Of a stretch of DNA of 64,000 bases, positions 3,320 to 64,000 are shown in pieces (position 1 is the first letter of the stretch; each line of letters opens with the position of its first letter). Source of the stretch: Iphione sp. A-MEVVRFRX5. Its lineage: Eukaryota. The stretch is from NCBI GenBank assembly GCA_976226885.1, contig OZ320313.1, positions 68,696,001 to 68,760,000 of the forward strand. The letters run 5' to 3'. The notes beneath the pieces are model-generated. The model had not been told where the DNA came from. It worked only from the letters and a program-made list of their open reading frames with translations, and searched no databases. Position numbers and translations under genes: made by a program.

Positions 3320-3463
3320 NNNNNNNNNNNNNNNNNNNNNNNNNNNNNNNNNNNNNNNNNNNNNNNNNNNNNNNNNNNNNNNNNNNNNNNNNNNNNNNNN
3401 NNNNNNNNNNNNNNNNNNNNNNNNNNNNNNNNNNNNNNNNNNNNNNNNNNNNNNNNNNNNNNN
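3320..3463. other. Assembly gap (144 N)
   Basis: Run of N. Confidence 1.
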
Positions 3464-7242: not shown

Positions 7243-20830
<13,588 letters not shown>

Positions 20831-27000: not shown

Positions 27001-28250
27001 ACCCAGGATCTGTAGCTTCGTTCCACCAGGCCCTCCTAGCTGCTGCTTTGTTGGTAGGAGCTTGCAGCCTGTCAGTGATTTATCCTTACCACTGAGAACT
27101 GTTACTTCTGCACCTGTATCCAGCTTGAATTCAGTAGTGCGTCCATCAACTGAAACAACTGCAGACCAGAATTCCTTTCACCTCAACAAGGAAGGGTATT
27201 TCACCATCATATTCATACTTGTGCTTTGTGTACTTTCAGGGCCTTAGACTTGCACATAGCCTGAAAATGACCTTTTTTGCCGCAGGAGTTGCATGACGTG
27301 TTTTTGGCTTCGCATAGATGTCATGGATATGATGGACAACCACACCAACTGCACTTCCCATTGGATGACTTCTGTCCATCCGCTAATGCCCTCTGTCCAT
27401 GCTGAGGTCTTTACATCTTACAGGGCCCATGCTGTTTCTTGTTTCCCTTCTTTCTCTGTCCGCACACATAGTCAACATCACCCATACTGTGTGACTCCTT
27501 GGTGCCATCAGTCTGTTGTTTGTGTGTACGGGACAACTCACAAGCCCACATAGTCTCAATGTATCTATTGTGATCAGGAACAGGACACGAAGAAGGCAGT
27601 CACGAGCGACAGTGTCTGTTGTACTGATAACGAGATGGTCGCGTATAAGACTGTCTTTCAGTTCTTCAAATTCACACGAGGTTGCAAGTTGTTGTAGCCT
27701 AACCACATACTCGTCAATGGTCTCATTGCCCAGTTGGTTGGCTGAATTAAACATAAAACACTCGAATAGGACATGATGTTGAGGGATAAAATGCTCTCTA
27801 AGATGTTTGATAATTATTTCTAGCTTCTTCTTATCCTTGTCACACACAGTTGGATGGGATTTCATAATTTTTAGGCATTCAATACCCATCACAGAACAAA
27901 GTGTTGCTGCTGCTTGAATTTGACCATGCTTTCTCACAGTATTGTCATCATTTTTATTTTCTCTCCTAGCCCTGTTGCTTTCAAATAATATTGCTACATA
28001 TTGTCAAAATCCCTCCAGTTCTCTGTGATGTCCCCCTTTATCTTCATAGGAGCTGTGGCAGGGATTTGGTATGCAGTCATGATGACAATATACACAGGCT
28101 TGTTCACTCCTGAACACTGCATGGATAGCAGGGCCTTCTCTTTGACTGGCATACACAGTATGACTGACACTATACTGTGTGATATGACTGACACTATACT
28201 GTGTGGCACTATACTTTGGTATTAAACAGTCATTTGGCAAATTCAAATTT
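24010..28250 (-). mobile_element. Decayed Ty3/Gypsy LTR retrotransposon (gag-PR-RT-RH-IN), truncated and nested
   Basis: gag (IRDHLVIST, 27383-28209), zinc knuckle CNSCGKKGHF, protease KLDTGAEVTV, RT (WCSGMVPVPK, SKLDANSGFWQI, LPFGITSAPE, DIDDVL), RH (ADASKDGLGAVLLQ, ETDHKPL), IN (LHQGHLGISKC, VVDYFSRW, VSDNGPQY). Many frameshifts. Confidence 0.92.
26342..26776 (+). mobile_element. Solo LTR (435 bp) inserted in the Gypsy pol
   Basis: TGTAG...TTACA ends, TATA-like tatataaa and AATAAA inside, 4-bp TSD ATAA/ATAT. Removing it restores the host frame GLGKLNDAHHISLCQD. Confidence 0.8.
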
Positions 28251-31540: not shown

Positions 31541-34519
31541 GTGAGTTGCTCCCTTATTTACTCCATCTTTTGCCCACAAATACAACATTCTGGCAATGAA
31601 GATGGGATAGTTTTAGGGTCACATGATACATCCACGTGTCTGTTCATCAAGAGCAAGTGCTTTAACTGTGGTAAGATTGGATACATCTGTGCTGGTTGCC
31701 ATCAAGTGTCAGATGGAGATTCTTCCAAAGGAAAGAGTGGTGCTGGTAAATTCAGGAAGCACCAGGTCAAAGCTCATCAGGTTGAGGGTGAGTGTGTCTA
31801 CGATGAGACTGGAGCACTGTACAGTGTGTTGCAAAGTGAGCTGAGCACTGAGGTAAAAGTGGAGATGTGTGTCAAGTAAATCTGTCAATTTCACCCTGGA
31901 CACAACTGCAACAGTGACTGTCATCTCTGAAGATGAATACAAGGAAAAGTTCAGTGACATTAAGTTATGACCGACTAATGTCAAGTTAAGGGGATATTCC
32001 AGCGCACCCATTCCTGTGCTGGGAGAAATTCTGGTGGATGTCAAGTACGAGGGACAAGTGCAGTCTCTCTGTCTACTTGTGGTGACTGGTAGTTGTGTGC
32101 CCCTACTCGGACGTGAGTGGTTGAGAAGGATTCAGCTGAACTGGAAGGAACTATTCTACATGAGTAGTAGTTCTTTGGTCAAGGGACTGTCCCTATCTAG
32201 GATATTAGGGAAGTATCATGTGGTGTTTGATGCATCAGCAGGCAATATCTCTGGGTTCAAGGATGACATCCATGTTAAGGATGATGCTGTTCCCATCTTC
32301 CATCATCCAAGACCAGTGCAATATGCTTTACGTGAGTCAGTTGGAAAGGAACTTGACAGACTGGAGTCATCAGGAATGATCACCAAGGTGGAGCATAGCC
32401 AGTGGGCTTCTCCAATTGTAGTAGTACCCAAGAAGGCTGAGGGAAAGGTACACATCTGTGGAGACTACAAGCTCTCAGTCAACAAGGTGGTTGAAGATGA
32501 GCCGTACCCTTTTCCTAATACAGAGGATTTGTTTTTGAGCATTTCTGGTGGGATGTTCTTCAGTAAGTTAGATCTGTCAAATGTGTATCAGCAACTGCTA
32601 TTAAACAACAAGTCGAAGAAGCTGTTGTCCATCAACATGCACCGTGGGTTGTACCAGTATGAGAAGTTGGTGTTCGGTGTGAGTACAGCACCAGCCATCT
32701 TCCAAAACATGATGGACCAAATTCTGTATGGATTGAGTGGTGTATGCTGTAAACTTGATGACATCCTCATCAGTACCAGATGCGAGAGTGAGCATCATCA
32801 ATTTTCACAAGGAGGTTCTCCAACATTTGAAGAAGCACAACATCAAGTTGAGACACGAGAAATGTAAGTTTGGAATGTCAAGCCTGGTGTACCAAGGCCA
32901 CATCATTTACAAAGAAGGACTTCATCCTACTCCAGATAAGGTAGAAGCTGTGTTGAAAGCGAAGACTCCCGAGAATGTGTCTGAGCTACGTACATACTTA
33001 GGTATTGTGAACTATTACGCATATTTTTTTGCAAAATTTAGCTAAGTTTGCACCATTGTACAAGTTATTGAAGAAAGAAGTTCTGTGGAGGTGGTCTGCT
33101 GAGTGTCAAGCAGCCATGGACTGTGTGAAGCAACACCTGACAAGTGACAGGTTGTTGGCACATTATTATGTCAATCAACTAATCAGTATTGCGTGTGATG
33201 CATCACCAGAAGGTATTATTGCTGTCATCTCACACACCATGGATGATGGGACTGAGACGCCGATCACATATGCATCACGTACCCTTGCATAGGCAGAAAA
33301 AGGGTATGCACAGATTGAAAAGGAAGTCTTGGGCATCGTGTTTGGTGTTGGGAAGTTCCACAAGTATTTGTATGGACGTTGTTTCATGCTTATCATGGAT
33401 CATAAGCCTCTGAGCATGATATTTGGGCTGAAGACTGGGGTGCCAACATTGGCTGCATTGAGACTTTAGCGTTGGAGTCTAATACTGATAGCATATCAGT
33501 ATGAAATCAAGTATCAGAAGTCTGGTGAGCATGGAAATGCAGACATGTTGTCTCGATTTCCACTCTCTGGGTCAGACTTTGCGACTGAATTGGAAGTCAA
33601 TTACTTCATGTACATGAATGATCTGCCAGTGTCCACTGGCAACATTTCTGAAGAGACTCGAAAGGACCTGGTGCTATCACGTATGTGGTACCATGTGATG
33701 ACAGGTTGGCTAGAGAAAGTGAGTGATGAATCTTTGGAGCCGTATTTCCATCAAAGGAATGAACTGTCAACGGACAATGGTTGTATCCTGTGGGGACTAA
33801 GGGTTGTCATACCACCGAAGTTCAGAGAAAGACTGCTGACTGAGTTGCATTCTGACCTAATTTGGATTGTCCGGATGAAGTCAGCAGCTCGGTCCTATTG
33901 TTGGTATCCAGGACTGGATAGTGAGATTGAATCAGTTATGGCAAGTTGCCCAGTCTGTGCTAAGTGTAAAGCCTCACCAAGTAAGGCACCAATCATTACA
34001 TGGAAAACAGCAGCGCAACTATGGAAATGTGTGAATATCGACTTCTTCGAGTTGAAAGGCAGTAATTATCTGCTATTAGTTGATGCCTATTCGAAGTGGA
34101 TGGAGGTAGCACCAGTAGGCAAAACAACATCAAGCAAAACAATCAAAGTACTGGGTGCATGGTTTGCGAGGTTTGGTCTGTCTCGAGAAATTGTGTCAGA
34201 TAACAGACCACAACTTGTATTGAAGGAATTTAAGGGTTTTCTCAAGAAGAATGGGATGAAACACAGCTTGTCACCGCCATACCATCCACAGTCCAAAGGT
34301 GCAGCTGAACATCAGGAAGCACTGAAGAAGCGCATGATGAGTGACCTGAAGCACCTTCTCGTTCACATACCAGAACACACCACATAGTGTCACCGGAAGA
34401 ACACTAGCAGAACTCATGTTGAAATGTCAAGTTTGTACTAGGTTCAGCATGTTTTAAAGATGTGGAGTCAAAGATTTGTGGTGAGGTGGAGCAGCATAAA
34501 AACAAAATGAAGCTCCGTG
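31541..34519 (+). mobile_element. Decayed Ty3/Gypsy element (gag knuckle-PR-RT-RH-IN)
   Basis: CFNCGKIGY, LLGREWL, WASPIVVVPK, ICGDYK, SKLDLSNVYQQ, FGVSTAPAIFQ, KLDDIL, ACDAS, YASRTL, LHSD..MKSAAR..C..C, VDAYSKW, VSDNRPQ, SPPYHPQSKGAAE. Stops and frameshifts present. Confidence 0.92.
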
Positions 34520-36401
34520 TGTAATATTCCCTTGCTGGGTAATAATAAGACAGATTTAACTTGGTTTTCTACTCCTTTACTGCACTGCACATGTGGTGTT
34601 ACTCCATGGCTCCTGGGTGGTGGTGTCTCACTCAATATTCACCCCTAACATGTTACCCGGTGGTACTGGTACACTACATCCCTTCCTTTCTTCAGAAACA
34701 AAACTTCCTATCATCCCTGACTTCAGATCTACTTCAATACACAGTCATGATGTCTTAAATGACCCAGTGTTCCTATACTACTGAGTTCATAACCTTCCTT
34801 TGATTTCACAGAGTACTGCTCACTGTTGGAATTAGGTGTGCTCTGTGAATCCTTTTTCTTCCCTTTCACAGAAATGAATGTTGCCTCTGCTGTTCCATCT
34901 TTTGTCTTCACTTTCTCATCCTCCTTCTTCCTTGTTCTCTCCTCCCTTGTCACTGTTCTGTCCTCTGTCTTAACAGTTGCATCCTTCAACTTCTTTTTCA
35001 TATTTTTCTGTTCTGTCCTCTGTCTTAACAGTTGCATCTTTCAACTTCTTGTTCATATTTTTCTTCCCCTTTCTCTTCCCCTTCCTTTTTGCATCTTCCT
35101 TCTCAGTTGTGCTAGAATGTTCTTGTCTGATGACATCTTCCGCACCTTTCTCACATTGGCAACATGGTAGCCTCCTCACTTGTTTGGCTCCTAGCCTAGT
35201 TGCCTCATTCACATGAGATTTCCTCTGGACCTCTTTCCAGTTCCCAATGTGAGTGGATACATTGGAGTCCTTCTGTTGAATGTCCATGTCATTCCCTTCT
35301 GCATTAATGGAATGCACTCTTGCTGACATGGGTGGTCCTACACGTAGCAAATTCAACCTCTCTGCAGTCTGTTTACCAAGTAGAGTCCTTCCATTCCCCT
35401 TGATAACAGTAAACTCATCTTGACAATGTTTCTTGCTTGCTGGACACACTATCTCAGCCTCAAATATTCCCAAAACCTCTATGGGCTTGGCTTGCCCATA
35501 CGTAAATAGCTTCTTGTTGGACAGTCGGGACACACACTTTACTCTTTTGCATTTCATCATGTTCCAGGTTGCCTTGTCCATGATGTTACAGGATGCACCT
35601 GAGTCGATCAACACAGATCTCAGGTTGACTCCTCCAACCTCCAGGTCAACCATACCATCCATCTTCTCTGCCCCTACTGCAAAGATGTAATCTCCAACCT
35701 GTCCACTGTTTGACACACCATGATTCACATGATACGTTTTTCCCTCTTCTTGGTACTTCTCCCTCTGTCGTCTCTGTCGAGTGTCTTGGCCCTTGGTGCG
35801 ACAGCATATCGCAAAATATCCCATTCTCCCACATTTGCTGCATTCTTTACCTCGAGCAGGGCATTCCTGATCCTTTGCCAAGTGATCCTTCTTGTTGCAG
35901 CAGAAACATCTCTTTCCGCTGCCATGTCCACTGCTTCCTTCTCTGGTTGCACCTCTGGCTCCCTTGTGTTCCTCCTTGTTCCCCTTTGAGAAGTTACCCT
36001 TCCTGTGTACTGCATTCACTTCAGTTGATGCCTCAGTCCCGGTCATCGACTTCATCTGTGCCTCAACTGCTTCGTAAGCACGTGCAATGTTCTCCAAGTC
36101 CTTCAATGTAGCATTCCCTGTCTTCTCCAAGAACTTGCATCTCAGCCGCTGTTCCCGACACTTGTCGATCAGCTGATCATGGATAGCCTCGTCAACATCC
36201 ATGAACTCACAGGAAACAGCCTTGTGGCGTAGGCGACATACAAACTGATCAACTGTCTCCCCAGCTCCCTGCTCTAGTTGACGGAACAGGTGCCTCTCGA
36301 ACGGTACATTGACAGTCAGTACAAAGTGTGCGTCTAGTCGATCAATACACTCCTTGAGGGACATACCCATCTCCTCAGGTACAAGAGTGTAAAACACCTC
36401 C
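34520..36401 (-). mobile_element. Internally deleted Gypsy element: gag-protease ORF joined to the post-integrase tail, PPT and a 159-bp 3' LTR
   Basis: ORF 34970-36484 has PFERHLFRQLEQ, DQLIDKC, CCHC knuckles and LIDSGASCN, then switches to a K/E-rich tail. PPT GAAGAAAGGAAGGGA precedes the LTR TGTAG...TTACA (34678 to 34520). A ~50-bp tandem duplication lies at 34955-35060. Confidence 0.85.
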
Positions 36402-36707
36402 TGTAACTGCGTGGCTGCGGCACCGCGGCATACAAGGGGTGCTGCGGCACAGGTGGATTGGACTGGTAGGGTGCAGCGGCACACCCCCGTGCGGCACTCG
36501 TAGGGGTGCTGCGGAGTAGGAGGGGTCCGGTACCCGGATGCTGAAGAGACTGGGGATGGGTATATAAGGGAGTTGGCCCCTCGGGCAGTTCAGATTACGT
36601 TTGGTGCTCACTGTTGGTGCTCACTGTTGATGCTCATAATTGCTCTTACTGAATAAACCTCATTACCTTAACTGGAGTTATGTCTTACTTGCGGAGCGGA
36701 CGTTACA
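36402..36707 (+). mobile_element. LTR (306 bp) truncating the gag 5' end; no TSD
   Basis: TGTAAC...GTTACA ends, tatataagg, AATAAA. Flanks CCTCC and CTATT differ. Confidence 0.7.
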
Positions 36708-41500: not shown

Positions 41501-44500
41501 AGTCATAGAGGTTATGTATGGAGAGAGTTTCGGTTCCGCTCTCAAATGGTTGGAATAGCCAATTTGGTCGGTAATCGATGTAGTCAGTAATAGAGACTCC
41601 ACTGTACTAGTCAGGAAGGGTGGAGGAAGGGCAGGGGGAAGGTTGGCGTGACAGCTGAGTACAGGCAGGGGACAGGTCGGGGTAGGCAAGGTGATGGCTG
41701 AGTGTACAGGCAGGTGTATGGATGGTGTGTGTGTGTGTTTTTTGTGCTGATCTCAAGGAATTCTGTCCAATTCTGTGTAAATTTTTTTTGTGCTGATTTT
41801 GAGGAATTCAGTTCAAATATGTGTGAGTTTTTTGCACTGATCATGAGGTATTCTGTCCAGTGTGAAAATTGTAACTTTTGTGTGCTGATCTGCAGGAATT
41901 GATTGAAGATTGAAGATGTTTTATTCGGAATCTCTGTTTACAATGCCAAAGGTCTTCGTCCGAACATGCGGACACCAAATACCCTGTCGAATATGTACAA
42001 AAGTAACACGTTTAGGCATTCAACATGTAGCTAGTCATTACAGCAGAGGGCTATGAGTGCAATGTCACAGATATAAGTAACCAATGAGAACAATAAACGC
42101 ATGATATAATGCAAGTGCTTCTTTTTGCTCACAGATGAAATAGGGAAAGGAGATATAATTGCAAGTGGTTCGCACTTGAACCAGGTTTTTTAGTACTGCA
42201 GATGTGCTACTTCCATAAACTCCGGTTTCAAGTTGGATTTTGACTCTGCTAAGGCTTCAGGCCCGCTGGATTCACCCAAACAACCAGTGGCAGGTCCCTC
42301 TCAACAAGATCAGGATGAAACCTTGTCTCAGTTTTTTTATCATTTAGTGACAGATGGTGATGATTCGGAGGTAGATGACTTCTTCCAGGAATTGGAAAAG
42401 GAAGTCTCGGCTGATGAGAAAATAAGTAAGAACATTGGCGCGGATATCACAGCCTTCATTAACAAAAGGCAGCTCAAACCTTGGTCGTTTGAGGATATTG
42501 AGAAAAGAGGAAATAGTGTCTTAAATCCTGACTCAAAGCAGAATATCACCGCCTGACTGCCGAGGACAATCCTCCTTCAGCCAAATTCTTATTTGGAGAC
42601 AACTTAGAGGCCACTCTGAAGAACTTGACACTGTCAGCATGCTCATCTCAAAAGTTGACAAGAACAAGCAGCAGAAGACTCCAAAGACCATACGCCAACA
42701 AGGCGGCTATTGCTACAGAGGAATAGGCTGTTTTTAGTCATACAGGGCAAACTTCCAGTACCAAGAGAACTGTATGCAGTACACTCACCAACCAATACAG
42801 CCACCACAGGCCCAGAAACAAAGACAGGATTTTCAGGTGAGGACCTCTAAAAAGTAAGTGGGGGGGAAGGTCCTCCCAAAGGTTCTCAGCAGGCAATTTG
42901 AAGAATTTTGTTGACGAGTGGAAGAGGCTAACTACAGATAAGGACATTCTGAGTGTTGTTCAAGTTAGAGTTTGTTTCTCCGCCTCCTCCAAGACCTTAC
43001 ATTAAACTGTTACAGTTGTCTGCTGCTGAAACCCTTGCCATGGACATACAAGTCAGAACTTATCGTTCAAAGGTGTCATTGTGGAAGATTATTCTCCTTC
43101 AGCCTTTCAAGCCAGGATCTTTCCTAGACCTAAGCCGGGCAGCTCTACTCGAGTCATTCTTGATTTGTCTGAGTGAATAAGTTTTTACCATATGAACACT
43201 TTAAAATGGACACATTTGATTATGTTGTTGGTGCATTGTACTCTCAGTGTTGGATGGCCAGTATTGACCTCAAGAACGCATATCATGTTGTACCTGTTCA
43301 TGAGGCTTGGCAAAAATTTTTGGCCTTTTCTGGAACAAGATTTTCTGCAGATACACAATCATGCCGTTGGGCCTCACATCGGCCCAAGACTCTTCACTGA
43401 AATTCTAAAACCGATTTTAGCTCAACTTCATGCGGCAGGTCATGATGCTATTGCCTACTTGGATGACTTGCTGATTCTAGGGCCATCCATCACTGGTTGT
43501 GTGGATTTGGTGACAGCAAGAGCTTGCCCGTTTCAGGACCTGGGGTTCTTTATCAATGGGGCCAAATCGCACCCTATACCAACTCAGAAATTGAAGTTCC
43601 TGGGATATTACTTGGAGGGTGTCCTCCCAAGGGTTCTCAGCAAGTCAAAGATCGATCAAGTGAAAGGAATGATCACGGAGCTCCTCTCCAAGCACTTGGT
43701 TCCCATCAGGCACACTGGTAGATATATTGAAGGCCAGCCAATATGGTCTCAGCCATTATAAATTCTTAGAAAAGGATAAAATTGGGTGTTAGTCAGGCAG
43801 GCAGGACAATTTGAAGGTCACATGCAAATTTCACTGCATAGCAGAAAGGACCTAGCATGGTGATTGCAGGCAGTTGATCACATCTATAGACCTATCCGGA
43901 TCCATGCACCCACAGAAACAATGGTCACGGATGCTTCAGGACGCGGTTGGGGCGTTGTGTTAGGAGCAACTTCTACAGAAGGACGGTGGCTTCCCAAGGG
44001 ATAGTTATGGTACATCAATGCCCTGGAGATTAACACTGTTTGGCTGGGGCTCAAAGCATTCTTCAGACACAGGTACAACTTTTAGTTACTGGTACGCACA
44101 GATAACACCACCGCGGTGGCTTACATCAATAAACAGGGAGGGACCAGGTCCACTCTTTGTAATAATCTGGGGTGCAAAATTTGGACGTGTCTTGAGGACA
44201 GGAGAGCTTGGGTTGTAGCCTCGTACATACCAGGCAAGCAGAATGTTGAAGCGGACTTCTTTTCATGTCATTTCAGTGAAGATGTGGAATGGAAGCTCAA
44301 TACAGAGCTGTTCCAGTATCTTGCAAAAGAGTGGGGACAACCAGACATAGAATGTTGGCTTCAAGAGCCGCAGCCCAATGGACAGATAACTGAACATGGA
44401 GGTGACGGGTAGCGCGGACGTAATTTTTATGAATTATGTCATGATGTGAATCGACCAATCAGATCGCTTAGAATTGCGACAATGTCACAATTACGTAAAA

Positions 44501-47500
44501 ATTACGACCACGCTACCCGTTACTTCAACTGCTGGTGATAGGCTCATTCAAGCCTTATATCAGCTGGAGACCAGATCCAGGTGCGTTGTTGGTGGACGCC
44601 TTTACAGTCAATTGGAGAACATTTCAATTTATTTACGTGTTTCCACCTTTCCCATTTATTTCCAGAGTCCTCCAGAAGTGGCGGCATGAAAAGACAATGA
44701 TGGTTCTCAACGTGCCGGCTTTGAAGACACATGCGTGGTATGGTCGGATCTGCCAGTATCAAACAAAGGACATGATCACATTCCCAGCCCAAAATAACAA
44801 TCTAATAAATGTGTTCAACAGCCCAGATTGTCGAGACATAAGCTCCATCTCACTCCTGGCCGTTCTCTTCTAAACATCAAAGTGGAAAGGTCTCTCACCA
44901 AGACAACATTGAGAAAGTACATGTAGAACTCTTGGAGACCATGCACTCCAGAACAAATCTATTCCTACCTGAATCGCTAGCCCACGTTTTGCGTCCTTAG
45001 AAACATTGATCCGTTGAAGCCTTCATTACAAGAAGCCCTTATGTTTCTCCATTCTTTGTTCTAGGCAGGGTTAGGTTACAGTGCAATCAACACTACCCAT
45101 AGCACCTTATCTGTTGTTATAAGATCTTTTGAAGGGGTCCCCTTTGGACAACACAAACTCACCACTAGAGTGTTAGGGAGTATTCACTAGAGTGTTAGGG
45201 AGTTCAATCTTAGACCCCGACAGGCTAGACTCAAATACACATGGGATGTGGAGATGGTACTCAATTTCCTCAAACAGTGGTTCCCTCTCCATTCGCTATC
45301 TCTTGAACAAATTTCTCTCAAGACTTCCACTCTCATTCTTCTTGCGTCCTGTGGTAAGATATAAATGGTGCATAACATTGAAGTATCAAATATCCATGAG
45401 GCGGGACAGGGCAGGGTCCAGATAAACTTTGCGTCACCCTTGAAACACAATCGCCAGGGTAAGCAACCAAATAGGATCATTCTCACCGGGTTCCCTCAAG
45501 AACCTGCCTTTGTGTTGTCACCCATTTGCAGGCTTACAGAGCAAGAACTGAAGATATCTGGGGGGACCAGGACAGACTTTTTATTAGTTATTTACCACCG
45601 TCGATAAGTCGATAACCACAGGGTCCCTTAGCAGATGGATCAAGGAAGTCATGACCAGGGCAGGCCTAGACACTCAGACTTTTAGAGCACACAGCACCAG
45701 ATCTGCTGTGGCATCCAAACTACACGCAGTGGGGATTCCGCTTTCTGACATCCTCAAAGGTGGCATGTGGAGCCATGAGAATATGTTCAAGGAATTTTAT
45801 CTCCAGCACATCATTTTTGTACGGGTCGTTTAATACGGTTACCTTACATGGTTGATTTTTTTCTCTCAGATGGAAGGTTGTCAACCATGTTACAGTATGT
45901 TGCTACTACTGCGTATTGACCGTGCTGTCCTCAAACCTGTTACCCTAAACATCTGTATATGGACTCCACCTTGCGGAGTAATGCTGACTCAAACTTGTTC
46001 AGTTACCTGAAACTTGTTGATGAGGGACTTCAAGTTTGAGGAAGTATTGTAGAGATGTACGGGTAGTGACACCTGCGGTACCGCAGCGAGATTACATGAC
46101 AGTGTACTCTGTGAACCCTGAAGTGACTAGCGGCTACGGCCCCGTAGGCATTTTACAGTGTAATGTACTTAGTGAACCTTGGGGATAGGGACGGCTACGG
46201 TACCGTAGGCGAAATTAGTGTTAAAGGTGACCTTGGACCCTGGATTCCCAGGCACCTGCTACATTGTAATTACTTGCTAGATTCTGATTGGTAAAGAACA
46301 ACTACACTTGTGATGTTGTATCCATTTTATTCCATGACGAGATACACTGTTACTATCACTGTTGGTCACATGACATGCTGGTTTAGTATAAATAAGGGCC
46401 CTGTGAGGCCAATAAAACAGTCTGCACTTGGATCTCTTGAGTGGAACTTGTTACTTTGGGAATGCTAAGCTGAACAAACCCACTTGGACTTACCACTAAG
46501 GGTGGATGCTAAGAGGGAACTACACTGGAATACTAGCAGGATAGTCAAGGCAGTACAGCAGTACACAATAGTTGGATTACTCCAAGTGGGAAAGCAAACA
46601 CGCAAATTACAGTATTACAAAGCAAGGTGGCAGTCCAGGCCCACCACCTTGGGTCTGGACTGGTGGCTTGGTCGGCCAGAGCTTTGGTTACTGAGTTGGT
46701 TATATAAACATTAATAACCCTACCCTGTCTTTCAGAGGAAGACCTGGACTGCCACTTAATGAGGTGCTCTCCAAAATCTTGTTTGTTCAGGTTTGAGTAC
46801 AGCCCGATTACTACCTCAAGGCTGATGTGACCAACTACAGATGGCGCTGCATCTCTACGTGGACTGCCACCTTGCTTCGTAATACTTCCTCAAATTTGAA
46901 GAAAATATCTCATATCATCTAATATGTTAGATTATTTTTTTCAGTTCTGGACTAAGAATGATGACCTCTTTTATACTTTTAGTGTGTCAGAAGTCTGTAA
47001 AATGTGTAAATTATTGGCCCAGGGCCCTTTCAGGCCTCCAAATGGCTCTGGACACAAAGCACACATGCAAGGAAAGGTCCTGTTGGCAGTGTTGTTAGTC
47101 ATGTTATATCGTTTTTTTCCACATGATGTCATCCGTGGTATGGGAAACAAATCTGTATGCATGGAAAGCAGTGAACAGTCATCTCATACCTCATCCAGTA
47201 CTTAAAGCGATTGAAATATGTATACAGTGTTCATTGGGTACCATTTATGCCTGTAAATGGCTACATTCATCACCCCAACCAAATGAAATGAAAACATGTG
47301 AAATGCATCCAAATACACAGGGGAACCCATCTGAAATGGGATTTACCCAGTATTGCAACATCACTGATAATACTGTGAGGCATATCAAATGCACATGTAT
47401 TTCGATATTAGCATATAAATAGAAAACTGGAAGACGCTATTTACTGATGCAGATGGTGCTACAGAAAGATCAACTTTTTTTCTGTTCTGGAAGATTCCAG

Positions 47501-56500: not shown

Positions 56501-56725
56501 GCTCAATTACTAGGTCAAGTAAGGCAAAGGCGGAGGTATGTTTCTTAAGAGAGAAAAAAATTATTATTTTTTGTTCCAGTAATTGTCATGGATCGTTTAA
56601 TGGAGACATTAAAGAAGACACCTGAAGATGATTATGAAAGTCGAATGGTAATCTATGAAAAAATGGGTGACAGAGCTGCCCAGGTAGAAAGTTTCAAACA
56701 AGCTATTGCCTCATATCAAAATATG
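38577..56725 (+). CDS. TONSL: Tonsoku-like protein (TONSL/NFKBIL2), N-terminal TPR region; partial, continues past the window
   Basis: Exons: 38577-38592, 48481-48576, 49943-50181, 51468-51621, 51935-52007, 52210-52381, 52902-53016, 56580-56725 (1011 nt, phases compatible, GT-AG). The translation MDEIDKYRKEKRKAERKGNLKEASQFCNFLGELLAKQGRYEEAIEEHQQEL..GVAVANRKIGECY..QRAFATIGRTYL..EMKSRLLLNIG..LGDLFAAQRAIRK..IYEKMGD matches TONSL TPRs. The 16-nt first exon is inferred from its GTAAGT donor, phase and promoter context. Confidence 0.9.
38919..39103. mobile_element. hAT-like MITE (185 bp)
   Basis: TIR CAGGGCTGGG...CCCAGCCCTG with internal TGTCGC repeats. Confidence 0.7.
39950..40352. mobile_element. 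MITE with GTCCAAAC-repeat TIRs, 7-bp TSD and an internal (TTAGGG)3 core
   Basis: AGGTAGT-CGGGTCTGAGTCCAAACG ... CGTTTGGACTGGAACCCG-AGGTAGT. Confidence 0.85.
40829..41604. mobile_element. Tc1/mariner-superfamily non-autonomous element with internal tandem repeats
   Basis: TA-CAGTGCAGTCTCTATT ... AATAGAGACTCCACTG-TA. Confidence 0.75.
44402..44523. mobile_element. Small fold-back (hairpin) insertion within the DIRS element
   Basis: gtgacgggtagcgcggacgtaattttt.. versus reverse-complemented right end gtaacgggtagcgtggtcgtaattttt.. Confidence 0.75.
46048..46611 (+). mobile_element. Solo LTR (564 bp) related to the LTR at 56892-57896
   Basis: TGTAG...ATTACA ends, perfect 4-bp TSD GTAT (46044-47 and 46612-15), TATAAATA and AATAAA. 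Shares ccaagtgca(g/a)actgttttattggcc(t/a)cacagggccc and other blocks with the 57-kb LTR in opposite orientation. Confidence 0.88.
50646..51369. mobile_element. Non-autonomous DNA transposon, ISL2EU-like (GG..CC ends, AT TSD), copy 1
   Basis: AT-GGAGGTCATAT ... ATATGACCTCC-AT. Confidence 0.7.
53243..54543. mobile_element. hAT-like non-autonomous element (CAGGGTTCC TIR, CAGGGAAAA sub-repeats) hosting a nested insertion
   Basis: CAGGGTTCC at 53243 and GGGAACCCT at 54534-54542. No clear TSD. Confidence 0.6.
53473..54340. mobile_element. ISL2EU-like element, copy 2, with a (GAGTGAGAACAT)n tract
   Basis: AT-GGAGGTCATAT...ATATGACCTCC-AT. The first ~130 bp are homologous to the element at 50646. 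Confidence 0.7.
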
Positions 56726-56891: not shown

Positions 56892-57896
56892 TGTAATTTA
56901 ATGGCTGACTTCCTCACTTGGTGTAATCCAACTAAGTCCAACTCGCTTAGTTACTCCACTATAATTCCAGTGATATCTTATCCAAGTCCTAACTCCAGGA
57001 TAATTCTCTGTTAAATCTCCCACTTGGTAGATCCAGCTATGTCTAGTGCTATCCTGTCTCAGTTACTTCACTGTAGTCCCAGTGCGGTTACATCCAAGTG
57101 CCAACCCTAGGTAATCCAAGTGGGTTTGTTACATCCCCAAATCAACAAGGTCCACTAGTGAGGTCCAAGTGCAAACTGTTTTATTGGCCACACAGGGCCC
57201 ATATTTATAGTCAAACTCCTGGCCATGTGATCAATACAATGTATCAGTCATGGAATAAAAAGGCTACAACATCCCAAAGATTTTTTTTGTCTACCAATCA
57301 TATTGCAGGTGCCTTGTCATCCAGGGTCCAAGGTGACCTTAAACATCCTATATGCCTGGGGTACCACAGGCCATTTAGCATAAATGACTGTGGTGCCATA
57401 GGCGGCCCTAAGCTTACTCTCCAGTACACATGCACTAAAGTCTTAGAGTTCACCAAGTACAACACAAGTGGCTGTGGTGCCACAGGCAACGTTACTATTA
57501 CAATCTATACGACTGTGGCGCCGCAGGCAACGTCACTACTAAGTCTTAGAGTTCATCAAGTACAACATAAGTGACTGTGGTGTCACAGGCAACGTTACTA
57601 CTACCACCTACACAACTGTGGTGCCACAGGCAACATTACTACTAAGTCTTAGAGTTCATCAAGTGCAACACAAGTGGCTGTGGAACCACAGGCAGTATTA
57701 CTATTACGTCTTAGAGTTCGCTAAGTACAACACGAGTGGCTGTGATGCCACAGGCGACATTACTACTAAATCCTAGAGTTCATCAAGTGCAACACAAGTG
57801 GCCGTGGAACCACAGGCAGTATTACTATTACGTCTTAGAGTTCGCTAAGTACAACACGAGTGGTTGTGGTGCCACAGGTAACATTATCACATTACA
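56892..57896 (-). repeat. 3' LTR (~1005 bp) with a tandemly expanded U3
   Basis: TG...CA ends, minus-strand TATAAATA and AATAAA near 57180-57208, tandem units actaagtcttagagttc(a/g)..aagt(a/g)caacac(a/g)agtgg at 57435-57890. Confidence 0.85.
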
Positions 57897-57959
57897 CTCT
57901 CCCCACCTTAAAAATAGCCTGCCGGGGGAAGTGAAAACCTGTTTCCCTGAGAAGTACAT

Positions 57960-58620
57960 CCTGAGCCAATATAAACCTCCATAGAGGGTAACAGTTGATC
58001 TACTAACTCCTTGGATAAATACTAGTAAATTTAGCAAAGCCTCCATAGGAGGTAATGGTCACCTAAGCAGCAAACTTTTCCTGAGTATACAAGTTAATCA
58101 TTTAATCTGGCAAAGCCTCCCTAGGAGGTAGTGATATCACAATAACCCAAAAGATCACAGATTAACATCCCAGTAACTGTAAGAGCCTTACTCTTTTTGT
58201 GGGGGTACAGTCCCCCTTTCATTTTACTGTTAACGTCCTCACTCTAACAACCCTTGAGTAGATGTGGGTAGATCTGACAAAGCCTCCGTAGGAGGTAGTA
58301 ATTGTCTAGGTAACACAAGATATCACAATAAATAAAAGATCACAGCTTAGCATTCCAGTAACCGTAACATCCCTGCTCTTTTTGTGGGGGTACAGTCCCC
58401 CTTTCATTTAACTGTTAACGTCCTCTACCTGTCCTCCGAGTACACAGGTTAAAGCTATCTAATCTGGCAAAGCCTCCATAGGAGGTAGTGATTAACAAAC
58501 AACATCAGTAACAAGGGTAAACTAGCGCAAAAAGACTCGTCCTATCACATGGCATACATCTCAACGATTTTTTTCTGGGGGTACAGTCCCCCTTTCAGTT
58601 ATACCTATCCAACATCTTTC
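57960..58620. repeat. Imperfect tandem repeats between the accessory ORF and the PPT
   Basis: Recurrent caaagcctcc(a/c/g)taggaggt and tttgtgggggtacagtccccctttc blocks. Confidence 0.8.
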
Positions 58621-58684
58621 ACAATCCACCCTGGCAGTTCCTTGTCATTACTCTGGGTGGATTCCCAGCTCCCCCCCCGTTTTC

Positions 58685-60262
58685 CTAAGCCGCGCGGGAA
58701 TCATGGGTCATTGTGGTGTCAGGGGTCGGGCATGGGGCAGAGTTAACGTCAGTCGTCGGCACTCGGATCTGAACGGGAGGTGCCCCCATACATATGTCGT
58801 ATATTGTTGGCTGTGTACTCTGCCGATGGGCGCGGACCTCCTGAACCTCACGTTGCCACCCGGGATCGTAGATTCGCGTTTTACTGGGCCCCCATCGCAT
58901 GGACTCTAGCACTCTTTCGGCGGCGTCGACGGTCTGGTTATGCGTCGAAAGTGTGGAGTCCAGTCGCCCCCAGTCTTGGGAGATAGGTAAAGACACCCCC
59001 GGCAGCAGCAGAGTAGGTCGTTGGCACAGGGGCTCCAGAAGAGTGCCGGGTAGGGCCTCCTCATCCTCCGCTAGGCACAACACCCAGGCAAGGGCTGCCC
59101 CTGCCATCAGTCGCTGCGCCCCAGTCATGTCATGCCACCGACGTGGGGGCCAGGTAATGGCCGGCGGCAGACGAACAGCCGCTGGGACCACACTGGCCCT
59201 CATGGCCGGCTGGTGAGGTCGAATGAGACCATCCAAGACGTCCCGCATCCTCCGGGACACGGGTTTCACGAACTCCGGAGGCAGATACCGTTGCACTAAT
59301 TGCATCAGGTGCCCTCCCGGCAGGGTTGGCGACGTGGGGGCGTCTCCTCCCTCCCCAGGCAGGAGAAGAGGATCGGCTGTCGCGACTGCCCCCTCCGGCT
59401 CTGTGGCTGCGCGCAGCTGTGCCAACACGGCATCAAAGTCCTCCACCTCGGGTAGGCCGGCCCGCTCCTCTCCAGATGTGTCGCCCCCTACCGGTAGGTC
59501 TGCGGGAGGTGTATACGGTACCACTGGGAGGTCCAGCTCGGGAAGGGCTGGGTTTGCCTCATCCGGTGCGCCCACCTCTGGTTCACGCTCAGGCTCGATT
59601 ACTTGGTCTGCCTGCGCCTCGGGCCCCAATGGCTCAGGGCCTTCCCCGTTCAACCCTTGTGGCTCCAGAGGGGCCGGAGGAGCTGGAGCAGGGTCGGGGA
59701 CTGGGGGATTTTGTACCTCTGGTGCGGCGTGGCCATCCCCCTCAAGACCTCCTTCTGCTCCCTCCCGTGGGGGAGAGCCCAGTCGTACATATCGGGGGAG
59801 TGGGGGTGGAGCTGCTCGTCGGGGGCACGTGGCTAAGTAGCTCATGATCTCCTCCTCCCCCAGGTACCCTCCTTCTAGTCGTCTCAGTCGGGCCTTACAT
59901 AACGCCGCTGTAAGTTCGTCATCTGGCACAGCGATAGTCTGTCCCCCCAGTGGGGCTACATCATACAAGGGCCGGTACAATTTCTCGGTCAAACCTAGCG
60001 CTACTACCCAGGGGTGGTAGTTCCTCTGGTGGGTCACCCAGTAGTGCTCATCTGTGATGTAACTGGGGCACCAGAGGCACATCATGTCCCTCCCTCGTTT
60101 CCCATGATGCTTCTCATCTAGGTGACGCTCAAAAGAGGGGCCCTTGAAGAAGGGACGCTTGCGGGGTAGACATAGCTCGCACAGCTTTACCCCTGGGGGA
60201 AGGGGTCCCTCAGATTTCCAAGTAAGCGGGAGGCGGGGCGTTGTAATTTTCTCCCGCGGCAT
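58685..60262 (-). CDS. Retrotransposon accessory ORF: two C2H2-type zinc fingers, Pro/Glu-rich linker and C-terminal helical domain (525 aa)
   Basis: ATG at 60262 in ACCATG context, no internal stops. CELC-x15-HLDEKH and CLWC-x12-HQRNYH at 60014-60181. Confidence 0.75.
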   Translation of the reverse strand: MPREKITTPRLPLTWKSEGPLPPGVKLCELCLPRKRPFFKGPSFERHLDEKHHGKRGRDMMCLWCPSYITDEHYWVTHQRNYHPWVVALGLTEKLYRPLYDVAPLGGQTIAVPDDELTAALCKARLRRLEGGYLGEEEIMSYLATCPRRAAPPPLPRYVRLGSPPREGAEGGLEGDGHAAPEVQNPPVPDPAPAPPAPLEPQGLNGEGPEPLGPEAQADQVIEPEREPEVGAPDEANPALPELDLPVVPYTPPADLPVGGDTSGEERAGLPEVEDFDAVLAQLRAATEPEGAVATADPLLLPGEGGDAPTSPTLPGGHLMQLVQRYLPPEFVKPVSRRMRDVLDGLIRPHQPAMRASVVPAAVRLPPAITWPPRRWHDMTGAQRLMAGAALAWVLCLAEDEEALPGTLLEPLCQRPTLLLPGVSLPISQDWGRLDSTLSTHNQTVDAAERVLESMRWGPSKTRIYDPGWQREVQEVRAHRQSTQPTIYDICMGAPPVQIRVPTTDVNSAPCPTPDTTMTHDSRAA

Positions 60263-61127
60263 GGTAGGCCGTCTCGGTAACCGGTCAGTCTTGGCTCGGT
60301 CAGTCGTGGCTCGGTCGGTCAGTGGCCGTCCGCAGTCAACTGTGGGGTCACAGTGACCAGGGAACACTCACCAGTCCGGGGCGGTGTGGCTGTGGGGGCA
60401 CAGTCGATAATCGCCAGACTCGTTTGGTCGGTGGTAGAGCTAGTGTCCCCCGCGGAGGTCAACTCCTATCTCTAGTCCAGTCGCTTAGTCCTCGGTGATA
60501 CCCCCTGCGGGCCCGCAGTCCAAAACAAAGTGTAGATGTCCCTGCGGGGTCACAGGCGTAATTACCAACCTGACTGTGGGGGCGCAGTCGAAGTCAGCGG
60601 CCGGCGTCCTCGTCGAAAATTTCAAGCGGTAGACCTCCCTGTGGCACCACAACCGCGATAATTCCTCTCTCCCATGCTGTCTGACGACCTTTCTCGCCTT
60701 TCTATCTCCCTCTCTTCAACTGTGCTTTCAGCCGGTGTTGGGGTTCTTGGCTTTTCCTCTCTTCACTGAATTACGGTAGAAGGGGTTCCCCAGAAACGAA
60801 AGCGAGGCTGGCGGATGTTTGGGTTGTCCGCTTCCGGGATTCCCCCCTTCTTGACTGTGGGCCCCCAGTCACCGAGTCGTTTATCGACTGTGGTACCACA
60901 GCCTCTGAATTCCTGCTTTTCTCCCATTTAACCCCCCTTTTAGAGGTTCATTCGGCCTCTCTCCCTACGAATTACGCTGAATCTGGGTAGAGATGTCCCC
61001 TCGGCCTGCGTCCTCGCAGTTCCGCTGTCGTAAGTTCCGTGTCACTGCGGTTCCACAGTCGTATCGTCAATGTGATTACGCAGTTTCCCACTCGACTGCG
61101 GTTCCCCAGTCGATTCCATCTGTTCGC

Positions 61128-61164
61128 TATATAAGAGCGTGCGATCGGCGGCTACCCGTCAGTC
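61128..61164 (+). promoter_or_regulatory. Pol II core promoter of the antisense accessory gene (TATA + Inr)
   Basis: TATATAAG at 61128-61135 and TCAGTC initiator at 61159-61164 (A at +33 from the TATA start), 33 nt upstream of ATG 61194. Confidence 0.6.
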
Positions 61165-61193
61165 CGACACTAGACCTCAGGCAGTACACATCA

Positions 61194-61458
61194 ATGGAAC
61201 TACCAGCGTACCTTGCAGGCCTCTCCCAGGGAGGGGCCTTTCTACCAGAAGACCAGGAGAGGTGCCCTCCTGTGGGAGAGGATTACTTCCCTGAAGAGCA
61301 GAAAGGTTATCCCCCCATGGAGGATAGGTAGGCACTTACATGCAGCTAGGGGCCTTCTCCAGTTACCAATTGCCATGTTGGATTTCCTGAAGCTGGTTAC
61401 TGATGTTCCTTTGGAGGTTCCAGGTGAGTTCCAGGTTTTTACAGTTACTTGTGTTGTA

Positions 61459-61504
<46 letters not shown>

Positions 61505-62226
61505 CTTCTCCTGTTCCTCTTTTCAGATCTCAGCCCCCGGATCCGTACTATCGGTTTATTGATGTGGGCACCCCTGGGCCTACGATAAGGGTGTATGGGT
61601 TGCATCCCATGTCCACCCATCCGCTGTACATCCCGGCTCCGGGCAACATTCGGTTGTATGGCCCGGATCATTGGGTGGGCATCTCTGTGCACCCGGTGAT
61701 CCAGCCAGTTCTGCCCCACAGCGACGATCCTCTGTGGTCCCGCCAGGACTCGGTATCTCCCGACCTCGGTTTGGGAGAAGTATCCAGCTACCTCGCCTCC
61801 CTCGACAACATCGAATCCAGCCACACCGATGAGGACGACTGGTCTCATTGTTCGATGACCTCCAGTCAGCTGGACCCCTGGCCCTCCTCGAACTCTGACG
61901 TCAGCGCCTCGCCCTCATATAGCTGTTCTAGTGGTGTGGCCTCGTTCACCGAGGTTGATTCTACGAGCACTTCCTCCTCCGCCACCTGTCCTCGGTCGCC
62001 CTCCCCGGAGGACACGAGCTCGCCGGTGGACACGCCATCCCGCTCGCCTGCCCCATCCAGTTCTCCTGATGTGGGGCCAGTCCTCGGGCGGGCTCCCCTC
62101 TCCTCCTGGCCGGCCGATTTCCTGTCGTCGTGGTACCCCGACCTGCAGCCCGGGGACCTGGCATGGCATCCCATCCTAATCTCCGACGAGGACGAGGATG
62201 AGGATGCCCCTCCCTCCTCTTCTTAA
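61194..62226 (+). CDS. Spliced antisense accessory gene of the retrotransposon (exons 61194-61327 and 61527-62226; 277 aa, acidic Ser/Pro-rich)
   Basis: AG|GTAGGC donor and a T38 + polypyrimidine + TTTCAG acceptor join two ORFs in frame (..MEDR|SQPPDPYY..). ATTAAA at 62350-62355 followed by a U-rich tract. Confidence 0.65.
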
Positions 62227-62399
62227 GTGGACTTTCCGCTTGACCATCTGTACATAGACTCATCCCGCGACCGTAACTTGTGTATATATGACTTTCATCG
62301 TCCGCCACTCGCAGTTGCTACCCACTTCGTTCCATTGTTGGTGTTTTGAATTAAAATTTGTTCATAGTTCAACTGCCTCTCCGTCTTTCCTTTGTTCTA

Positions 62400-62560
62400 G
62401 CACGGCCCGCCCAGAGGACAAGGACCGCAGCTCGGTTTCCGTCGTCCACCATCCCGAGTGCCTCGCTCCTTCCAGAGGAAAAGGACGGCAACTCGGCCAC
62501 CCCCTCGTCCAGAGGACAAGGACTGCAGCTTGGTCTTCTCTCCCGTCCAGAGGACACATA
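62400..62560. repeat. Short tandem repeat (~55-60 bp, about 3 copies) downstream of integrase
   Basis: Recurrent ccagaggacaaggac(c/t)gcagct. Confidence 0.7.
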
Positions 62561-63122
62561 CCGCAACTAGGCTTCTTCCGCCTGTCGTAATGTTTCCCGG
62601 GGGAATGATACCGACATCATCCTCCGATCTCCCCGCGTCTCTTACATCGAACCGTTTCGAGCTCCACGGCCTCCGGGACGTTCTCTCCCTACCCGTTCCA
62701 CAAACTTTTTGCGCGCTCCAGGGTGTTCGTTTCCCTCGCCAGGCCTTTCGAGCAACTCCAGGAGGTCCGCCCTCCTCCATGAACTTTTGGGCCGGGTAAA
62801 CCCCAGGATGTTCATCCTCCTCCAGGGAATTTCTGAGCGTGACATGCGCTTCCGGGCGTTCCCTAATCGCCCCGCGGACTTTTCGAGTGCTACCAGGGAG
62901 GCCTCCCCTCCCACAGGTCGTTGCCGGTTGATGAACCCTCAGGCCACCTGTGACGCCTCTGGTGGTTATTTCGAGCCTCAGTGGCTCCGGGCCGTCCACC
63001 GCTCCCCACGAACCATTTCGAGCGCAGCCAGGATGTTTGTCCTCCTATCTCCAGACTCATATTTGAGTCTCCAGGACACCCGTCCCGAACGCCTTCTTCG
63101 CCCATCTCCCTATTCCGGCTTC

Positions 63123-64000
63123 CTATACGGAGACCCCGCCACCGCCGTCTGGGGCGGAGAGCTCCGCCTTCTTCCGCCAGGAGATGATCCACCGGGGTAA
63201 TCGTTCCCCGCGATACAACCGTAATCGATTCCGATGTACTACTCTTGGCCTCGCTTGTTTAGAGCGTTGCACAATCAGTCGTTCATCATCCAGAGCTCGG
63301 ATAACTAGCCACGGCCCTGACCAGGGGAAGTGAATCTTCGGGCTTCTCCCTTTTGGTGGCTGTGCCTCATGGAGCCATACCACCGCCCCCACCTTCAAAG
63401 CTTCCCCCTTCATTCTCCGATCATAAGCTCGGGCCTGGGATCGAGCCGCCGTCCTCAGGTTCTTCCGGACTCTACCGTATGCTTCTTGAAGTCGTCGCAA
63501 CATTTCCCCTACCGGGTCAGGTAAGTCTTCCACCTCTGGGTTTTTCGAAGGAAGCCCGTCCATCGCATGCACCGGAAGAGTAACCTCACGTCCGAACATC
63601 AGGTAGTTCGGAGTGTACCCGGTGCTAGCTTGTGGTGAAGCCCTATACGCCATCATGAGAAAAGGGAGTGCGGTGTCCCACTCATCTTGGCTCTCGTGGC
63701 AATGTGCTTTGATCATCTTCCCCAAGGTCCGGAAGCTACGTTCAATGAACCCGTCGCTTTGCGGGTGTCGCGGGGTGGTCCTGGTCTTCTTGATGTGGAG
63801 ATAGTCACAGAGGGCCGTGATGATCTCGCTGCAGAAATTTGTTCCCTGGTCACTGTGCAGCTCGTGGAAACAACCATAGCGAGCGATTACCTCCTCGGCT
63901 AGGACCCGGGCGATCTTTGGGGCTTTCTGGTCTGGTAGGGGGAACGCCTCAAGCCACTTTGTGAAGTGATCCCCCACCATCAGGCTGTAGCGGTTTCCTC
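63123..64000 (-). CDS. Gypsy pol: integrase catalytic core and C-terminus (open to the window edge)
   Basis: GDHFTKWLEAFPL, HSDQGTNF, TTPRHPQSDGFIERSF, WDTALPFLMMAYRASPQASTGYTPNYLMFGRE, WSGPW, VVHRNRL. No stops. Confidence 0.95.
   Translation of the reverse strand, partial: GNRYSLMVGDHFTKWLEAFPLPDQKAPKIARVLAEEVIARYGCFHELHSDQGTNFCSEIITALCDYLHIKKTRTTPRHPQSDGFIERSFRTLGKMIKAHCHESQDEWDTALPFLMMAYRASPQASTGYTPNYLMFGREVTLPVHAMDGLPSKNPEVEDLPDPVGEMLRRLQEAYGRVRKNLRTAARSQARAYDRRMKGEALKVGAVVWLHEAQPPKGRSPKIHFPWSGPWLVIRALDDERLIVQRSKQARPRVVHRNRLRLYRGERLPRWIISWRKKAELSAPDGGGGVSV

Follow-up and report, generated by a model that had tools for sequence, protein, structure and literature searches.

Retrotransposons of the long terminal repeat (LTR) type are usually considered to depend on host factors for their transcription. 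Among complex retroviruses, spumaviruses combine a transactivator with an internal promoter, and deltaretroviruses combine a transactivator with an antisense bZIP gene. Extra open reading frames (ORFs) are also well documented in Gypsy elements. In the plant Tat/Retand/Grande elements, additional ORFs follow pol, some of them antisense with promoters of their own, and tandem arrays are present (PMC7264820; PMC11963269). Antisense non-coding transcripts have been described for micropia and discussed for plant elements (PMC7264820). The LTR elements of bdelloid rotifers carry varied third ORFs after pol (PMC5408684), and the C. elegans element Cer1 is reported to require the accessory nuclear protein CERV for its own expression (PMC10309623). 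The locus analysed here lies at the end of a 64,000-nucleotide stretch of Iphione sp. A-MEVVRFRX5 (assembly GCA_976226885.1, contig OZ320313.1, positions 68,696,001 to 68,760,000 of the forward strand), hereafter the window, and comprises the 3' half of a Ty3/Gypsy element. Between pol and the 3' LTR, this element carries ORF3, a sense gene with two C2H2 zinc fingers and homologues in related elements, together with a predicted antisense transcription unit and a palindromic motif that recurs in the LTR. The original prediction for this locus had started from the premise that ordinary Ty3/Gypsy elements contain only gag-pol and sometimes env, which was too strong because extra ORFs are known from plant, bdelloid and Cer1 elements.

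The window analysis covers one copy of the element, in its 3' half, and all positions originally given for its features proved correct on re-reading (Table 1). On the minus strand, the integrase stop is followed by 5.2 kb of further sequence, a polypurine tract (PPT) and a 1005-bp 3' LTR; the 5' LTR and the target-site duplication fall beyond the window. The 292 visible pol codons are unbroken from the window edge to the stop. The partial integrase (IN) matches the Pfam model rve at E 8.2e-8, with 32.9 bits where the cut-off is 32.6, and, weakly, Integrase_p58_C. Moreover, 270 integrase homologues were found, several of them named Gypsy integrase, and the named ones come from animals. The DDE (rve) core at the end of pol is the one that characterizes Ty3/Gypsy (Metaviridae-type) elements, and the PPT and the TG..CA ends of the 3' LTR are visible. 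As had been proposed, the sequence is the 3' portion of a Ty3/Gypsy element with a long pol-LTR region, and it is best explained as a non-chromoviral LTR retrotransposon. Its visible integrase, ORF3 and antisense exon 2 all appeared unbroken, and its GC content is 55-66% over 58.5-63.5 kb, compared with approximately 40% in the flank.

The sense accessory gene is ORF3, whose open stretch of 560 codons compares with a maximum of 300 among 500 shuffles of its region. Searches with the ORF3 protein gave no Pfam family and no match in 5.8 billion clustered proteins (its length range), in 1.84 billion representatives, all of which were scanned, or by exact look-up. Because ORF3 alone was without matches, relatives were sought through the integrase, and ten relative loci were examined on long contigs of two metagenome assemblies from the European Nucleotide Archive (ENA). 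The best of the relatives' integrases are 44-50% identical to that of the window in full-length matches, and identity over the aligned part is 47-62%, the highest value coming from partial matches. Two of these loci, L002 and L003, are complete elements with LTR pairs that are 100% and 99.4% identical, and in L002-L004 reverse transcriptase (RT) and RNase H precede the integrase. The distance from integrase to 3' LTR is 5.3 kb in L002, 7.5 kb in L003 and 5-7.5 kb in the relatives overall, and in L003 this interval contains an intact sense ORF of 920 aa. The ORF3 of the relatives has the same position, after the integrase, and the same orientation as that of the window. The C-terminal part of the window protein is 42% identical to that of L001 over 64 aa (E 1.6e-11 in a set of 1866 ORFs), again at the same position, and the L001 protein in turn matches the L003 and L002 ORFs in the finger region (E 0.003-0.006) and in the C-terminal region (E 0.01). 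Scans with ORF3, and with an alignment of the window and L001 sequences, gave no match in JGI metagenome contigs or in IMG/VR.

How well the gene survives varies among copies. ORF3 sequence is kept in seven of nine copies sampled from the L003 assembly and entirely missing from two. It is intact in L003 itself and carries one frame change in L001 (outer bounds 12307-14005). Of the eight further copies from the L003 assembly, six retain ORF3 in part: two hold single partial pieces that are unbroken, three have one frame change each, two of them with additional in-frame stops (one and six), and one has two frame changes and one stop. The gene caller also splits pol into at least two pieces in most relatives, including every relative that still holds RT, RNase H and integrase. 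When diverged subfamilies among the relatives were compared, pieces of ORF3 gave dN/dS values of 0.15-0.21 at dS 0.8-1.5; by this measure ORF3 is under purifying selection in the relatives.

These data bear on two alternative explanations. The first holds that both ORFs are chance frames in GC-rich DNA and that the palindromes are a by-product of tandem duplication. The GC content of 55-66%, the several ORFs of 100-200 aa on opposite strands and the origin of the U3 palindrome copies from tandem units would agree with it. For ORF3 it is refuted by homologues with conserved zinc ligands and a low dN/dS; moreover, both open stretches exceed all shuffles, and the ten internal palindromes lie outside tandem repeats and have nothing else in common with U3. 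This explanation is exceedingly improbable. The second holds that the cassette, or at least its antisense unit, is a passenger, either a captured host fragment or a nested insertion present in few copies, and transduction-like capture is indeed known in LTR elements (PMC11963269). For ORF3 this is likewise refuted by the conservation of position, orientation and selection in the relatives. Judged on its sequence conservation, ORF3 is a genuine, lineage-conserved accessory gene with two C2H2 fingers, and it is very probably a functional gene of the element.

The C2H2 assignment, which had also been part of the original prediction, follows from ligand spacing and from the family profile. Both fingers show the spacing of zinc ligands found in classical C2H2 domains: finger 2 follows C-x2-C-x12-H-x4-H and is hydrophobic at its core positions, and finger 1 follows C-x2-C-x15-H-x4-H, with a longer spacer. 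In an alignment of five sequences from the lineage, overall identity in the finger region is just 21-26%. Cys28, Cys31, His47, His52, Cys62 and Cys65 are nevertheless invariant in all five, the last His pair is retained in the four sequences long enough to reach it, and Arg or Lys directly precedes the first His of finger 1 in every sequence (5/5). A profile built from this alignment matched the Protein Data Bank (PDB) entries 2i13 (E 2.3e-7) and 1mey (E 1.2e-4), followed by AEBP2, ZNF692 and KCMF1, and the relatives match zf-C2H2_4, zf-Di19 and zf-C2H2, all under the gathering scores. Beyond the basic finger region (net charge +7), ORF3 has an acidic, Pro-rich centre (residues 151-315, with 22% Pro and a net charge of -26) and a helical C-terminal part. 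The conserved domain within that part has no matching PDB structure or known family. A weak similarity of residues 318-366 (59165-59311, minus strand) to the C-terminal kinase-domain helices of PKMYT1 in the PDB (E 0.03) is probably due to chance. As animal LTR retrotransposons with acquired third ORFs after pol, the bdelloid elements resemble this one; their ORF3s are env-like or encode a GDSL esterase or a DEDDy exonuclease, and neither a C2H2 protein nor an antisense gene has been described in them (PMC5408684). In the literature search, a C2H2 ORF3 in an animal Gypsy lineage was not found described. The conserved gene with its C-terminal domain would constitute a new accessory-gene family.

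The second line of evidence is the palindromic motif. At no more than one mismatch, CTGTGGNNCCACAG has 16 matches against 0.18 expected, all within 57356-61058, and the degenerate form CTRYGGNNCCRYAG (CTRYGG-NN-CCRYAG) has 24 matches in the window against 1.06 expected. Of these 24, U3 and the interval 60340-61109 contain ten each, three belong to a related LTR (46073-46208), and the last is a stray copy; the sharing of the motif between U3 and the intergenic region, as originally proposed, was thereby borne out. The U3 copies (57356-57877) fall within tandem units of 62/103 nt and, owing to this tandem duplication, are not independent of each other. The ten internal copies stand in non-repeated sequence, in which only the 17-nt motif aligns with U3; for that reason, an origin of the internal control region from an LTR copy that was inverted and then diverged was rejected. 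The distance between the start codons of ORF3 and the antisense gene is 931 bp, and the last two internal palindromes are located 83 and 32 nt ahead of the antisense TATA box, so the same cis motif occurs in U3 and at a predicted internal promoter whose TATA box and initiator face the antisense gene. The RNA of the palindrome array folds no better than shuffled sequence, which favours a role at the DNA level and argues against an RNA structure.

The related LTR, at 46049-46700 on the plus strand, comes from a sister family and is either partial or solo; its identity to the element's LTR is 69-77% in the R/U5 and core-promoter part, and its TATA/poly(A) core at approximately 46.4 kb is nearly identical to the element's core promoter. 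Its three palindromes, spaced 61 nt apart, read CTGCGG..CCGCAG once and CTACGG..CCGTAG twice, so that both halves have changed together relative to the element half-site CTGTGG. The retention of symmetry despite changed letters points to a symmetric binder.

The factor could also be supplied by the host. In this alternative, the palindromes are sites of a host transcription factor, and ORF3 serves the element in another capacity, such as export or packaging of genomic RNA, targeting of integration or countering of host silencing. The relatives are relevant here, as they conserve ORF3 and have no palindrome arrays; half-site variants are, in addition, mixed inside single sites of the internal region, as a tolerant factor would permit. 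The half-site may also resemble the core site of Runt-domain factors, which some retroviral enhancers use. Cer1 provides a precedent, being an animal Gypsy element with an extra nuclear protein that acts on RNA export; CERV is reported to act on the export of genomic RNA and to be made from a spliced sense mRNA, and zinc fingers are not mentioned in the abstract, in which respects it differs from ORF3 (PMC10309623). No similarity of CERV to ORF3 appeared in any search made. Against a host factor, the paired half-site change in the related LTR fits a family-specific symmetric dimer better than a monomer, and the arrangement of basic fingers followed by an acidic, Pro-rich centre is a transcription-factor-like layout. 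Overall, the host-factor explanation is given a minority chance, though a substantial one.

The third component is the antisense unit, predicted from consensus signals and phase arithmetic to yield a 277-aa product. With exon 1 ending in phase 2 and exon 2 starting at the third codon position, the two are in frame. The antisense open stretch of 350 codons compares with a maximum of 293 among 500 shuffles. The mirror frame translates into Arg/Gly-rich junk with stops, which makes it less likely that this ORF is the shadow of a former sense ORF. The product is Ser/Pro-rich; residues 76-232 of the exon 2 part contain 27% Ser and are strongly acidic, the product is predicted to be disordered, and its C-terminal end consists of a short hydrophobic run followed by Asp/Glu. 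This end may resemble SUMO-interaction motifs, which serves as a lead only. The uninterrupted run of 38 T in the intron on the plus strand (A38 on the sense strand of the element) is unusual for retroelement genomic RNA. Since the antisense intron is not spliced from sense genomic RNA, copying of the element can take the unit with it, which would give a retroelement a route to carry a spliced gene with its intron retained.

Whether the unit encodes a protein has to be weighed against the explanation that the frame arose by chance or that the locus produces a non-coding regulatory antisense RNA, of which antisense retroelement transcripts are known examples (PMC7264820). The latter explanation draws on the low-complexity composition of the Ser-rich, acidic, disordered product, for which no homologue was found in 5.8 billion clustered proteins, the PDB, Pfam or the relatives. 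It also draws on a stronger, out-of-phase GT donor at 61423/61424, inside the proposed intron and 96 nt downstream of the modelled donor, and on a codon-position GC pattern unlike that of IN and ORF3. It has to contend with 232 stop-free codons and an open length that none of the 500 shuffles reaches, with the TATA-initiator spacing, in-frame first exon, 38-nt pyrimidine tract and ATTAAA signal, and with the junk-like mirror frame. A functional protein from the antisense unit is judged to be just short of an even chance, and the absence of one is rated somewhat lower than that. The proposed antisense spliced gene is upheld in its full set of RNA polymerase II signals and not in its conservation: no homologue or copy was seen in any relative, some of the tests in relatives being uninformative because DNA identity yields matches in every frame. 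With no homologue anywhere, it remains a single-copy prediction.

The possibility of a passenger arises again for this unit. The pol stop and ORF3 are 2.86 kb apart here, against approximately 0.8-1.3 kb in the relatives, and the extra length corresponds to the antisense unit plus the palindrome region; unit and control region therefore look like a gain of the sub-lineage. No relative carries the antisense gene. On the other side, the element's own palindrome flanks the promoter of the unit, the GC content of the unit, approximately 60%, is like that of the element and unlike the approximately 40% of the host flank, no terminal repeats or duplications bracket it, and the presence of an intron means that it is not a processed retrocopy. 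The passenger explanation is accordingly considered unlikely.

Among the closest known layouts are those of plant Tat/Retand elements (maize Grande with gene23, rice RIRE2 and Silene Retand), in which the interval from pol to the 3' LTR measures 2.9-6.6 kb, compared with 5.2 kb here. They share an antisense ORF with its own internal promoter (the product of Grande gene23 is a nuclear protein), tandem repeats before the 3' LTR, and a suggested regulatory, DNA-binding role (PMC11963269; PMC7264820). They differ in that their antisense ORFs mostly contain the plant-only TRP28 domain (PF04195), which was not found here, the antisense product giving no Pfam match at E <= 10. Furthermore, the conserved gene of the present element is a sense-strand C2H2 gene, the named integrase relatives are animal, and no motif shared by U3 and an internal region is described for plant elements in the literature found. 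The present element would be an animal counterpart of these plant elements with extra ORFs.

Altogether, the shared motif and the accessory genes suggest self-regulation. In the proposed mechanism, the palindromes would be binding sites of a dimeric factor and would form one orientation-free enhancer module, serving the LTR promoter as well as internal transcription in both directions. ORF3 would be a nuclear nucleic-acid-binding regulator of the element, and the antisense product, or the antisense RNA, would modulate the same circuit. Two fingers would read about 6 bp, the length of one half-site, and a dimer would suit the whole 14-bp palindrome, which makes ORF3 the most economical candidate for the factor; that ORF3 itself binds the palindromes is doubtful nonetheless. 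We infer, and purely so, that the encoded proteins may act on the element's own LTR. That ORF3 of this Gypsy lineage forms a regulatory set with the predicted antisense unit and the palindromes of this particular element is rated evenly between true and false. The most detailed version, in which a dimeric two-finger C2H2 protein occupies U3 and the internal bidirectional region, half-sites co-evolve between sister families, and the acidic antisense product tunes the circuit or host silencing, is quite improbable.

Besides the missing homologues and the competing donor of the antisense unit, several observations weigh against such a regulatory set. The window ORF3 alone reaches no Pfam zinc-finger model, the spacer of its first finger being 15 residues long, and AlphaFold single-sequence models of the ORF3 and antisense proteins were poor (pLDDT 38 and 40). 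Not every C2H2 domain with two fingers of the Di19/KCMF1 type binds DNA. In the relatives that bear ORF3, neither palindrome arrays nor a comparable LTR motif were found; a link between ORF3 and the palindromes is thus not a family trait. Sibling copies, the recovery of which had been proposed, were absent from every collection searched, so that the evidence from the element itself comes from the one 3' half in the window. Finally, neither a TATA box nor an initiator was seen facing ORF3 on the sense strand. Of the proposed divergent genes at a shared internal promoter, the antisense TATA box and initiator were present and a sense core promoter was not, and a true divergent promoter pair is consequently not established; ORF3 could be expressed from an internal TATA-less start or from a spliced LTR transcript.

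In layout, although not beyond it, the element resembles complex retroviruses, with accessory genes 3' of pol, one of them antisense (here predicted from signals), and copies of one responsive motif in both U3 and an internal promoter. It differs in having no env, in the internal position of its antisense promoter, which is not in the 3' LTR, and in the intron of its antisense gene. A comparison of the window proteins with the PDB and Pfam gave no match named as a foamy-virus or HTLV regulator; the retroviral sequences themselves were not part of that comparison. A sense/antisense gene pair around a control region with a shared motif was not found described in the literature search. If the most detailed version of the mechanism were real, it would represent a self-contained transcription circuit within an animal retrotransposon. 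A Gypsy lineage that keeps a selected zinc-finger gene would bring simple retrotransposons closer to complex retroviruses, and so would a member with one motif repeated in both its LTR and its internal control region.

Table 1. Features of the Gypsy element, with positions in the window
Feature	Position	Strand	Details
Gypsy element, 3' half	56892-64000	-	leaves the window at 64000, inside the integrase
C-terminal pol (end of integrase core and C-terminal domain)	63123-64000	-	stop 63123-63125
GC-rich non-coding stretch after pol stop	62380-63122	-	degenerate short repeats
Predicted antisense unit, 277-aa product	61128-62375	+	consensus signals, phase arithmetic
Antisense promoter (predicted)	TATATAAG (TATA) 61128-61135; initiator TCAGTC, A at 61161	+	33 nt from TATA start
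Antisense exon 1, predicted coding sequence	61194-61327	+	ATG 61194; 134 nt, phase 2 end
Antisense intron (predicted)	61328-61526	+	GT..AG; T38 at 61463-61500; TTTTCAG before 61527
Antisense exon 2, predicted coding sequence	61527-62226	+	232 open codons; TAA 62224-62226
Antisense poly(A) signal ATTAAA	62350-62355	+	124 nt past stop
Between-gene region, 10 palindromes CTRYGG-NN-CCRYAG	60263-61127	.	copies at 60340-61109; 865 bp
ORF3, sense accessory gene, 525 aa, intact	58685-60262	-	ATG 60262; homologues in relatives
Two C2H2 zinc fingers of ORF3	60014-60181	-	C28, C31, H47, H52; C62, C65, H78, H83
Conserved C-terminal domain of ORF3	58895-59245	-	W-P-P motif, then Ala/Leu-rich helix
3' untranslated region	57897-58684	-	ends in polypurine tract 57897-57909
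3' LTR, TG..CA, 1005 bp	56892-57896	-	U3 ~57178-57896; U5 ends 56892
LTR signals	TATAAATA 57202-57209; AATAAA 57180-57185; predicted start near 57177	-	

In the LTR, the AATAAA directly ahead of the predicted start would leave the poly(A) signal silent in the 5' LTR. The 5.2-kb region between pol and the 3' LTR contains repeats at 57960-58650 and at 62406-62575. At 57960-58650, between the ORF3 stop and the PPT, three units of approximately 185-190 nt each contain two short palindromes, CCTCC-NNN-GGAGG occurring five times and GGGGGACTGTACCCCC three times. The RNA of these 3' untranslated units does not fold above shuffles (z -0.43) and belongs to no Rfam family, and Rfam and tRNA scans were empty. 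In the stretch after the pol stop, a 37-nt unit is present four times at 62406-62575, with units of approximately 45 nt further up that end in CTCGAAA-like sequence. The ORFs of this stretch have no Pfam match and no protein similarity in the relatives, and on the plus strand its repeats sit just beyond the antisense poly(A) signal. Tandem arrays with 89-, 97-, 99- and 139-nt units were also observed in L002 (15416-16023) and L003 (14848-15462, 16451-16728 and 17611-18402), placed between ORF3 and the 3' LTR, where they echo those of the window element and the 3' repeats of plant Retand elements.

Elsewhere in the window, at least three other retroelement remnants were noted at 24065-27937 (minus strand), 32016-34387 (plus), 34970-36484 (minus) and 43192-43761 (plus). 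One is an RT/RNase H accompanied by a gag-like ORF, another combines RT and integrase, and a third is a gag-protease ORF that includes a CCHC knuckle. Behind a further RT, at approximately 45600-45800, lies what appears by eye to be a tyrosine-recombinase C-terminus (DIRS-like). The 504-aa ORF at 34970-36484 was considered as a parallel accessory gene and rejected, being the gag-protease of another element. A run of 144 N at 3320-3463 marks a gap or masked sequence. Just outside the LTR, a stretch of 42 codons on the plus strand (56600-56725), running from an ATG to a GT donor, is TPR-like with a weak match to GPSM2 (E 0.005); it is probably a host exon, and the element may therefore sit in or beside a host gene.

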